A DNA stretch of 64,000 nt from Octopus sinensis (Eukaryota). Under the pieces are notes generated by a model. That model was not told the origin of the DNA. It made no database searches and was given only the letters and a program-made list of their open reading frames with translations. Made by a program: the position numbers and the translations under genes. The stretch covers positions 372,001 to 436,000 of the forward strand of contig NW_021824954.1 of NCBI RefSeq assembly GCF_006345805.1, written 5' to 3'. Shown in pieces: positions 39,911 to 47,520 of this stretch (position 1 is its first letter; each line of letters starts with the position of its first letter).

Positions 39911-40558
39911 ATAACCTTGAATAATAGCAATACCAATTTCAAAGATAAAATAACCAATTTGTACTATTAAAACAATTGATGTTGAGATAATAGAAGTATT
40001 AATTAATGAAAATGATAAGAAGTCACCGATTAGGGTTAAGATAATATGTCCAGCTCTAATGTTTGCTGCGATTCGAATTGCTAAAGTTAAAGGTTGAACT
40101 CTAATACTTATAATTTCAATTAGAGGTAAGAAGGGGATTAGAAACGAAGGAGTACCTGAAGGTAGAAGAGATGCGAGGGATGAATAGCTATTATTTTGAT
40201 AGGATGAAATGATTAATCTTAATCATAATGGAAATGAGAGAGAGAACGATATAGCTAAATGACTAGTAGTTCTAAATACATAAGGAATTAAGCCTAAGAG
40301 GTTAAAATTAATAATTATTAAAAATAATGATGAGATGATGAGTGAAAAGCCTCCTAAATTATTTCTAAAAGATCGAGTAATTTGGATGTTAATAATTTGT
40401 TTTGGGATTATTAGAGAGGAGTTGAAAAGTGAAGGAAAAATTCAGAATGAAGAATTGATAAAAAAGAGAGATCATAAGGATAAGATTCATGTGAGAGAAT
40501 GAAGATATAATGTTGTTGAGTTATGATCATCAAATGAAGAAAAAATATCTACTATCAT
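39911..40558 (-). pseudogene. atp6: ATP synthase F0 subunit 6 (NUMT copy, 3'-truncated)
   Basis: MMVDIFSSFDDHN...LAIRIAANISAGH...EIGIAIIQGY. Fully translated in code 5 with no stop; ends at the junction without a stop codon. Confidence 0.95.
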
Positions 40559-40559
40559 T

Positions 40560-40715
40560 TTATCAGTTATATTTTGTTTTTTTTGTTATTTTTTTTTGGT
40601 CTATTAAATGATATTTATTTTTATTATTTCATCATATGATAGATGAGTTAAGGAGAAGTAAAAATCAAAAGAGAAAAAAAAGTATAATTCAATTTAAAGG
40701 GGAAAGTTGTGGCAT
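40560..40715 (-). pseudogene. atp8: ATP synthase F0 subunit 8 (NUMT copy)
   Basis: 156 bp, MPQLSPLNW...KYNW*. Confidence 0.95.
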
Positions 40716-40716
40716 A

Positions 40717-40783
40717 TAAAAAGTACTATAAAAATAGTAATTTAAATTTGACAAATTTATGTTATTTTATTAACTAACTTTTT
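40717..40783 (-). tRNA. trnD: mt tRNA-Asp (GTC), NUMT copy
   Basis: Acceptor AAAAAGT/ACTTTTT; anticodon arm AAATTTGTCAAATTT. Confidence 0.85.
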
Positions 40784-41468
40784 ATGTATTTATATTTAAT
40801 AGTCAGTTATTAAAAGTGTTTATGTTTACGATTTCGAGTGTAATTGGTATAAATGAGTGGTTTGCTCCGCAAATTTCAGAGCATTGTCCATAATATAATC
40901 CAGGTCGATTGGAATAAAGGTTTAATTGATTTAGTCGACCTGGGATAGCATCTACTTTAATACCTAAAGAGGGTACAGTTCAGGAATGAATAACATCTGC
41001 GGATGAAATAATTATTCGAGTATTTGTTTTTATTGGAATAATTAGATGATGGTCTGTTTCTAGAAGTCGGAATGAACCTTCATTTAGTTCATTTAAAGGA
41101 ATTATATATGAATCAAATTCAATATTTATAAAATCTGAATATTCATATCTTCAATATCATTGGTGTCCTAGTGCTTTAATTGTAAGAAGTGGATTAATAG
41201 ATTCATCTAGTAAATAAAGTAATTTTAAAGATGGTAGTGCGAGGAAAAGTAGGATGATTCTGGGGATGATTGTTCAGATTGTTTCAATTTTTTGACTTTC
41301 TGTAATTATTAATGAAGAAAATTTGTTTGTTATTAATAAAACTGTAATATATATAACTAATGTTAGGATGATAATTAGAATAAATATAGAGTGATCATGG
41401 AAAAAAATAAGTTGTTCTATAAGGGGTGAATTTGCATCTTGAAATCCTAATTGTCCTCATTGGGTCAT
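40782..41468 (-). pseudogene. cox2: Cytochrome c oxidase subunit II (NUMT copy)
   Basis: 687 bp, [26 protein letters not shown]...[15 protein letters not shown]...*. Confidence 0.96.
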
Positions 41469-41479
41469 ATTATTTTAAA

Positions 41480-43012
41480 TTAAATAAATAAGGCTCCAGT
41501 TTCTATTTGATTATGAAAATCGACTGGAAGACGGTTGTCTCATTCTAAAGATGTATTTAAGTGGTTTGATCAAATAATAGTTCGTTGGGAAATTAATCTT
41601 TCTCATACAATAAATATGAAAAATATAATGGAAGTTAGTGATAAAAGTGATCCTATAGATGAGACTATATTTCATTTGGTGTAGGAGTCAGGATAATCTG
41701 AATATCGTCGTGGTATACCTGCTAATCCTAAAAAGTGTTGTGGAAAGAAAGTAATATTTACTCCAATGAATATTATGTAGAAATGGGATTTGGTATATTG
41801 TTGATTTAAGGATAGGCCTGTAATTAGAGGATATCAGTGGGTGAATCCTGCAAATAAGGCAAAAACAGCTCCTATAGATAATACATAATGGAAATGTGCA
41901 ACTACATAGTATGTATCATGGAGTATAATATCTAGTGATGAATTAGATAGAACAATACCAGTTAGTCCTCCAGTAGTAAATAGAAAAATAAATCCTAATG
42001 ATCATAACATGGGGGGAGTGTATTTGATAGGGGAACCATAGATAGTAGCTAATCAACTAAATACTTTAATTCCTGTGGGAATTGCAATAATTATTGTGGC
42101 GGCTGTAAAATATGCTCGTGTGTCTACATCTATACCAACTGTAAATATATGGTGTGCTCAAACAATAAATCCTAAGAGTCCAATTGATAATATTGCGTAG
42201 ATTATACCGAGTCTTCCGAAAGTTTCTTTTTTTAAAGAATAATGGGAAACAATATGTGAAATTATACCAAATCCTGGTAAAATTAGAATATATACTTCTG
42301 GGTGACCAAAGAATCAAAATAAATGTTGATATAGAATTGGATCTCCTCCTCCACTAGGATCAAAAAATGTAGTATTAAAATTTCGGTCAGTTAAAAGTAT
42401 AGTAATTGCTCCAGCGAGTACTGGTAATGATAGTAATAGTAAAATTGCGGTAATAAATACAGATCATACAAATAGTGGAAGTCGTTCTATTAATATACCT
42501 TCTCATCGTATATTAATAATAGTTGTAATAAAGTTGATGGCTCCAAGGATTGATGAAATACCTGCTAAGTGAAGTGAGAAAATGGCTAGATCAACAGAAG
42601 GTCCTATATGAGCTAAATTTCTTGAAAGAGGCGGGTAAACGGTTCATCCGGTACCTGCGCCTCTTTCAACTGCTGCAGATGAAAGGAGAAGAGTAAGAGA
42701 AGGAGGTAAGAGTCAGAAGCTTATATTATTTATTCGTGGGAATGCTATATCTGGTGCTCCTAGTATTAAAGGAACTAATCAGTTTCCAAATCCTCCGATT
42801 ATAACTGGTATAACAAGGAAAAAAATTATAACAAATGCGTGAGCTGTAACAATTACATTATATAATTGATCATCATTTAGGAGGGATCCTGGTTGTCCTA
42901 GTTCTGTTCGAATTATTAAACTTAAGGAGGTACCTAAAAGTCCTGATCAAATTCCAAAAATGAAGTATAGTGTACCAATATCTTTATGATTTGTTGAGAA
43001 TATTCATCGCAT
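41480..43012 (-). pseudogene. cox1: Cytochrome c oxidase subunit I (NUMT copy)
   Basis: 1533 bp, MRWMFSTNHKDIGTLY...GAGTGWTVYPPL...ETGALFI*. First ~135 codons translated by hand with no stop. Confidence 0.97.
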
Positions 43013-46370: not shown

Positions 46371-46375
46371 GACTA

Positions 46376-46446
46376 TTTATGATTTGGTGTATGGGCATAT
46401 AAAGTTTTGATCTTTAAGGAAAAGGTTCAAGTCCTTTTTTTGTAAA
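46376..46446 (+). tRNA. trnQ: mt tRNA-Gln (TTG), NUMT copy
   Basis: TAAAG-TTTTGAT-CTTTA; T-arm AAGGTTCAAGTCCTT. Confidence 0.85.
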
Positions 46447-46512
46447 GAGTTTTAAGTTAAATTAAACTAAAAGTTTTCAAGACTTTAAATAGATAATTAT
46501 ATTTAAATTCTG
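46446..46512 (+). tRNA. trnW: mt tRNA-Trp (TCA), NUMT copy
   Basis: AAAGT-TTTCAAG-ACTTT. Confidence 0.85.
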
Positions 46513-46579
46513 TGTGAGGTGGTCGAAATTTTTAGTCGGTAGATTGTAAATCTATTTATAAGTGTTTACTTTCTCATGG
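46513..46579 (+). tRNA. trnY: mt tRNA-Tyr (GTA), NUMT copy
   Basis: GTAGA-TTGTAAA-TCTAT. Confidence 0.85.
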
Positions 46580-46640
46580 TTTTATATTTTAATTAAAATA
46601 TTAAATTGCAAATTTAAAGATACATGTTTATGTTAAAACT
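46579..46640 (+). tRNA. trnC: mt tRNA-Cys (GCA), NUMT copy
   Basis: TTAAA-TTGCAAA-TTTAA. Confidence 0.85.
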
Positions 46641-46646
46641 TGTTTT

Positions 46647-46714
46647 GATAAAGTAAGCTAAGTAAGCTATTGGGTTCATACCTCGAAAATAGATTTTGTA
46701 TTGTCTCTTTATTA
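46647..46714 (+). tRNA. trnM: mt tRNA-Met (CAT), NUMT copy
   Basis: AGTAAGCTAAGTAAGCTATTGGGTTCATACCTCG, the typical mt trnM signature. Confidence 0.88.
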
Positions 46715-47520
46715 TATATATTAATTTGACTTTGGTTTTGTTTTTAATTATTATAATTTTATACATGTTAGGTTTATTTAATATATATATATATATATAT
46801 ATTGCGCTTTTATGTTGATATTTATTTTGTATTTATTATAGTAAAGTTTAATATTTATTATAAGGGTACTTTTAATTTAATATTAAGTGGTTTTTAATAT
46901 GTTAATTGATATTTCAGTATATTTATTTATACAATAGATGAGAGTTTTATATAGAAATTATAGATTATAATTGGATAAATTTGTGCCAGCATCTGCGGTT
47001 ATACTTATAATTAAGATTAAAAGTTTTTGGTTTAAAGTAAAGTAAGACAATTTTCTTTTAAAAGAAAATTATATAGTTGGTTTTTTGGTAAAATTTTTAG
47101 AATTAGCTTGTTTGTTTATGTTTTTCTTTATTGTTAATACTTTGAAATTTTGAAAATAAACTAGGATTAGATACCCTATTATTTCTTATTGTAAAAATTG
47201 ATTTTGTTTACCTAAGTATTATGAAAATGACTAAGATAGTTAGTTATTGATTGTTGTTTAAAACTTAAAAGGTTTGGCGGTTTTACATATCCAGTTAGGG
47301 GAGTTTGTTAATATAATTTGATAATCCACATTTTAAACTTACTTTTTTTTGAATTATATATATATATAACGGTTTATATATTGCTGTCGGCAGTTTATAT
47401 TTTAAGAATAAAAGGACTTTTGAATTTTAGGATTTATATGTCAAGTCATAATGTAGCTGATAAAGAAGGTTTAATGGACTACTATAATTTATATTATTTA
47501 CTTATCCGGATAATGAAAAT
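46715..47520 (+). rRNA. rrnS: mt 12S rRNA (NUMT copy, 3'-truncated)
   Basis: Conserved blocks TGTGCCAGCATCTGCGGTTATAC (~46982), AAACTAGGATTAGATACCCTATTAT (~47158) and AAACTTAAAAGGTTTGGCGG. Fades into nuclear microsatellite after ~47520. Confidence 0.92.

Follow-up and report, generated by a model that had tools for sequence, protein, structure and literature searches.

Introduction

Nuclear mitochondrial DNA segments (NUMTs) are a well-known class of sequences, and large young representatives have been documented. The cat is said to carry a 7.9-kb Numt that has become tandemly amplified, and rare polymorphic or "mega" NUMTs occur in humans. Chimeric joins between organelle and nuclear sequences are likewise a known class of artefact in long-read assemblies. 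For octopuses, or cephalopods in general, no NUMT description was found in our literature searches. Here we report on a block of mitochondrial DNA (mtDNA) of 7,614 bp in the Octopus sinensis genome assembly GCF_006345805.1. It is located within a stretch of 64,000 nucleotides of contig NW_021824954.1 (positions 372,001 to 436,000 of the forward strand), hereafter called the window, the numbering of which is used throughout. We consider it fairly probable that this block represents a genuine and very recent NUMT, its physical presence in the chromosome being inferred from the assembled sequence.

Like NUMTs in general, the block consists of several kilobases of colinear mtDNA with control region, rRNA and protein genes, is broken within genes, lacks a target-site duplication, is bordered by nuclear repeats on both sides and carries genes that cannot be translated with the nuclear code. 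It differs from the known examples in showing no measurable divergence from living mtDNA and in being placed in the nucleus at the level of the assembly, and from the cat Numt in being single-copy in the window, with no tandem amplification. Its genes are intact, its junctions abrupt and its identity to the organelle genome nearly 100%, as in organelle-nuclear chimeric joins; unlike such joins, which usually occur at contig ends or at shared repeats, it is internal and its junctions lie off shared repeats. The living O. sinensis mitogenomes (NC_006353.1 and NC_052881.1) agree with the block in gene order, gene lengths, reading frames, tRNA set and haplotype-level identity, whereas the block comprises only 48% of the circle (7.6 of 15.7 kb), is cut in rrnS and atp6 and is joined to non-mitochondrial DNA.

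Results

Extent and Integrity of the Mitochondrial Block

Comparison by blastn with the mitogenome record NC_006353.1 (15,744 bp) demonstrated that positions 39910-47523 are occupied by one colinear piece of the O. sinensis mitogenome, the minus strand of the window representing the standard mitogenome orientation. The limits of 39911-47520 given in the original prediction were thus at most 3 bp off. The block corresponds to reference positions 13726-15744 joined to 1-5666; as it crosses the arbitrary start of the record, its origin is circular mtDNA rather than a database entry pasted into the assembly. Two matches make up the piece: reference 1-5666 against window 45576-39910 with 99.894% identity, three mismatches and three gap positions, and reference 13726-15744 against window 47523-45577 with 95.6% identity, 14 mismatches as counted by BLAST and 74 gap positions. 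The block has a GC content of 0.256 compared to 0.39 for the remainder of the window, with an abrupt shift at both edges, where the GC skew, strongly positive within the block, also changes sharply.

Seven protein genes are present, six of them complete and one, atp6, truncated; the original prediction had counted eight, with seven complete. Its other statements on the content were confirmed: the block includes 14 tRNAs, a 648-bp control region and most of the 12S gene (816 of the 980 bp of rrnS), the native octopod order is retained and matches that of NC_006353, and both ends fall within genes. Read with the invertebrate mitochondrial code, all frames are uninterrupted, with neither a stop nor an indel in 5,161 coding bases. 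Under the standard code, 52 in-frame TGA codons become stops and break every gene, in agreement with the earlier claim that the use of TGA for tryptophan makes these genes untranslatable in the nucleus. No nuclear function would be expected of the block genes.

Divergence from Living Mitogenomes

The record NC_006353.1 carries the name "Octopus vulgaris" and is linked to the O. sinensis assembly. It has been argued that the Japanese specimen behind it is O. sinensis; its identity is 99.85% to the O. sinensis mitogenome NC_052881.1 and 96.79% to Mediterranean O. vulgaris (PMC10700109). The block, NC_006353 and, as outgroup, the mitogenome of O. vulgaris sensu stricto (OY720585.1) were compared in a three-way MAFFT alignment. 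Since the block is 99.894% identical to NC_006353 over 5,666 bp compared to 97.3% for O. vulgaris sensu stricto and 88% for O. bimaculoides, its source is, as judged by these identities, the O. sinensis lineage after the split from O. vulgaris.

Between window and NC_006353 the alignment left six substitutions together with indels in repeats and homopolymers, the control-region mismatches called by BLAST resolving into indels. This difference falls within the 0.15% that separates the two living O. sinensis mitogenomes. The original prediction had called for an alignment to the mitogenome of the same individual and a count of the differences; the six substitutions obtained against this conspecific record represent no substantial divergence. 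Four of them are private to NC_006353 (reference positions 14135, 15213, 1622 and 2800), the window carrying the O. vulgaris state at each, and the remaining two are private to the window, namely, a synonymous T>C in cox2 at 40869 and a T>G in the control region at 45658. Two against four private substitutions are too few to show a slowing of the window copy.

The indels are divided in a similar manner. Restricted to NC_006353 are the tandem duplication of a 64-bp control-region unit, two additional TA-repeat units and an additional G. Restricted to the window are three homopolymer changes, one of which, T5>T7, lies in the T-loop of trnR (44593-44594), while the others, A5>A4 and T5>T6, lie in the control region. 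The altered trnR still folds into a cloverleaf. The chance that three randomly placed indels would all miss coding sequence is approximately 0.03. Because of this low probability, and because no coding indel or stop is present, the private differences look like variation of a working mitochondrion or long-read homopolymer error, unlike neutral decay. The 64-bp duplication itself is perfect and is located at 15122-15185 of NC_006353.1, the window (near 46136) and O. vulgaris sensu stricto having one copy each; the duplication is thus a length polymorphism (variable number tandem repeat, VNTR) of O. sinensis mtDNA.

Differences between the block and O. vulgaris in coding sequence are distributed over codon positions 1, 2 and 3 as 17, 1 and 99, and in the genes that aligned without gaps 61 codon differences are synonymous and four non-synonymous. 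This pattern argues that, for practically the whole period since the two species separated, purifying selection in the mitochondrion acted on the lineage of the block. The O. vulgaris record OY720585.1, which is nanopore-based, deviates from both O. sinensis sequences by small indels in cox1, cox2 and atp8, and its COX1 is annotated at just 263 amino acids (aa). These indels are probably residual homopolymer errors in the record.

Age of the Proposed Insertion

Block and O. vulgaris differ by 182 mismatches in 7,619 alignment columns (approximately 2.4%), and the split of O. sinensis and O. vulgaris is quoted as 2.5 million years (My) (PMC10700109). From these two values a rate of approximately 0.5% per lineage per My was taken. 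With the four substitutions private to NC_006353, this rate would date the common ancestor of the window and NC_006353 haplotypes to roughly 0.1 My, the approximate upper limit from a Poisson distribution being 0.3 My. As an insertion can be no older than this haplotype ancestor, its age would be at most about 0.1 My, with the same rough upper limit of 0.3 My, an estimate that is valid only if the assembly consensus represents the nuclear copy. The age could be effectively zero, or the insertion could still be polymorphic, and in the comparison with NC_006353 and O. vulgaris no mutation was assignable to the period after insertion.

The original prediction had offered a very young insertion or an assembly chimera. 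This either/or is what the evidence allows, and the signature of youth is present, with 99.9% identity over the gene-rich part and no frameshift or stop. The age itself stands less firmly, as youth is read from an assembly consensus in which an older NUMT could look alike.

Junctions with the Nuclear Flanks

The left junction lies at 39909/39910, where the nuclear flank (39828-39909) consists of (TA)37 followed by ACGCGTACAT. At the right junction (47523/47524) the flank at 47524-47705 is a TG/TA/CA-rich low-complexity sequence passing into (GA)n at 47623-47705. About 40 kb of nuclear sequence are present beside the block on one side and about 16 kb on the other; N is absent from the window, and the block is internal to a gap-free contig. 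A search for repeats between the two flanks, direct or inverted, gave nothing but low complexity, which argues against a target-site duplication as well as a palindromic artefact. The mitochondrial breakpoints, at 5666 in atp6 and 13726 in rrnS, are not located at tracts common to the nuclear flank, which makes a false overlap driven by repeats unlikely. A false overlap via (TA)n, common to mtDNA and nuclear DNA, was considered and rejected, since the breakpoints do not lie at mitochondrial TA tracts. When the two flank ends are joined, they read as one continuous imperfect TA/CA-rich microsatellite cluster, which weakly suggests that the flanks belong together.

Genes of the Block

Starting at the atp6 breakpoint, the minus strand carries the 5′ part of atp6 (39910-40558; the first 649 of 744 bp, cut at the 3′ side and with no internal stop), atp8 (40560-40715; 156 bp, complete), trnD (40716-40784), cox2 (40784-41468; 685 bp), cox1 (41480-43012; 1533 bp, complete), nad2 (42984-44021; 1038 bp, complete), trnS1 (gct) (44022-44090), nad3 (44091-44439; 349 bp), the tRNA cluster I, N, R, A, K (44440-44778) and cox3 (44797-45576; 780 bp, complete). 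The control region (45577-46224) is followed on the plus strand by the tRNA cluster E, G, Q, W, Y, C, M (46225-46715) and by partial rrnS (46716-47523), which is cut at the trnV side. The predicted gene lengths of 156, 687, 1533, 1038, 351 and 780 bp were correct, with the qualification that 687 and 351 result from reading cox2 and nad3, which end in T-- stops, to the next stop.

The COX1 protein of the block is 100% identical to that of NC_006353.1. NAD2 is identical to the O. sinensis mitogenome protein YP_009994964.1 and has Ser at residue 23, where NC_006353 has Phe; this difference is a natural polymorphism. ATP6 is annotated at 247 aa in NC_006353 (5018-5761), whereas most octopod ATP6 proteins have about 230 aa. 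Some 17 residues at its end remain unaligned with relatives, and the gene overlaps trnF on the complementary strand (5735-5801), so that the annotation is probably over-extended.

The tRNAs were detected with ARAGORN in mitochondrial mode, which gave the 14 expected (D, S1, I, N, R, A and K on the minus strand, the others on the plus strand); trnQ was the sole tRNA of the block found by the default bacterial mode and by Rfam. ARAGORN also called a tRNA-like structure, "trnT(agt)", at the same place in the control region of both sequences (window 45690-45746 and NC_006353.1 15575-15631), which is not among the 22 canonical tRNAs.

Repeats of the Nuclear Flanks

At assembly level both flanks are nuclear in character, with mariner and long interspersed nuclear element (LINE) fragments, repeats resembling short interspersed nuclear elements (SINEs) and numerous microsatellites. 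A Mos1-type mariner fragment at 39019-39445, with HTH_48, the N-terminal HTH domain, at 39107-39445, ends about 0.5 kb from the left junction, and another, with Transposase_1 (part of the DDE domain), is located at 27166-27810. Decayed LINE reverse-transcriptase fragments lie at 13265-14329, 29545-30135 and 52985-53857. The SINE-like repeat of about 130 bp at 38075-38215 has further copies near 5871, 8940, 17405, 54920, 55670, 55854 and 61293; at least seven copies with 76-91% identity are spread across the window, and they probably represent an octopus SINE family. Within the mariner fragment of the left flank, the mitochondrial mode of ARAGORN called a "trnI(aat)" (39135-39213), which is almost certainly a false positive. 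The 1-kb bin 33001-34000 (GC content 0.495, GC skew +0.43) is unlike its neighbours.

Discussion

On the reading that we favour, a linear 7.6-kb fragment of O. sinensis mtDNA, broken inside rrnS and atp6, would have been inserted into a double-strand break of nuclear DNA, presumably through end-joining, the break site lying within a microsatellite cluster in repeat-rich DNA. The captured genes would have been non-functional on arrival owing to their TGA codons, and so little time may have elapsed that decay is invisible.

Several observations weigh against this reading. The five private differences of the window, namely, one synonymous substitution, one substitution in the control region and three noncoding homopolymer indels, leave all amino acids unchanged, and such silent-only differences fit mitochondrial variation or homopolymer error rather than nuclear decay. 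The complete lack of post-insertion change is also expected of a chimera built from mitochondrial reads. By exact protein look-up, no other assembly was found to contain the two junction-spanning open reading frames (ORFs), and two ORFs of the flanks, a reverse-transcriptase-like one of 290 aa and a mariner HTH one of 112 aa, were likewise unmatched in other assemblies. Moreover, the assembly from which the window appears to derive, that of O. sinensis by Li et al. 2020, is fragmented, with 20,491 contigs (PMC10700109).

These observations lead to the more serious of the alternatives, a possible but clearly less probable one, namely, that cytoplasmic mtDNA long reads were threaded between nuclear reads via chimeric library molecules or mis-overlaps, so that the block would not be present in the chromosome. 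An assembly chimera would account for a block that is indistinguishable from a living O. sinensis haplotype, for coding sequence free of frameshifts and stops, for private differences that are all silent or in homopolymers and for the failure of the look-up of junction-spanning ORFs to provide a second source for the junctions. Functional cytoplasmic mtDNA shows uninterrupted frames, exclusively silent variation and an identity in the intraspecific range, features that are compatible with a very young NUMT too. As nuclear DNA lies on both sides, a chimera would require that artefactual joins arose twice independently, at mitochondrial positions unrelated to each other. Neither junction coincides with sequence common to mtDNA and the nuclear flank, neither Ns nor a flank duplication, inverted or direct, hints at a palindromic or adapter artefact, and the ends of the flanks, taken together, resemble an uninterrupted microsatellite cluster. 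It is the need for two artefacts, the location of the junctions off shared repeats and the position of the block deep in a gap-free contig that make us favour a NUMT.

Mitochondrial reads far outnumber nuclear ones, and consensus building or polishing can overwrite NUMT variants if no mitogenome decoy is used. The block might accordingly be a NUMT that is real but older, its own substitutions and small indels having been replaced by abundant mitochondrial reads in consensus or short-read polishing; the junctions would then be true and the youth artefactual. We regard this as improbable. It would fit a living-haplotype block between real-looking nuclear flanks, but no positive evidence points to it. 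In addition, old NUMTs usually carry larger indels or transposon insertions beyond the repair capacity of polishing, whereas the block is perfectly colinear, and its three private homopolymer differences, possibly residual read errors, show that it is not a plain copy of a clean mitochondrial consensus. The caveat, which the original prediction had not raised, nevertheless undermines the description "very young" even if the insertion is real.

That the reference record was simply pasted into the assembly is rejected, because the block differs from it by six substitutions and several indels, does not have the 64-bp duplication and runs across the record start.

The phenomenon is well known under either reading, and the block is at best another case of the NUMT class. 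If it is a chimera, an assembly that serves other octopus studies as a reference for annotation and synteny contains an error at this locus. If the favoured reading of a recent NUMT is true, the block would be, as far as our literature searches show, the first large NUMT to be characterised in a cephalopod. It would show the uptake of mtDNA into the nucleus at a stage before any decay, in which both junctions could be informative on joining, and could serve as a presence/absence marker within O. sinensis. We see roughly an even chance that half a mitogenome, including the control region and the COI barcode region, was transferred to the germline at most about 0.1 My ago, is possibly still segregating and is identical to living haplotypes. 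Mitogenome, heteroplasmy and COI-barcode work on this species, the East Asian common octopus, based on the polymerase chain reaction (PCR) or on reads could then co-amplify a nuclear copy that is unrecognisable by stops or frameshifts, and the insertion could give rise to false heteroplasmy and to ambiguous barcodes in the O. vulgaris species complex.

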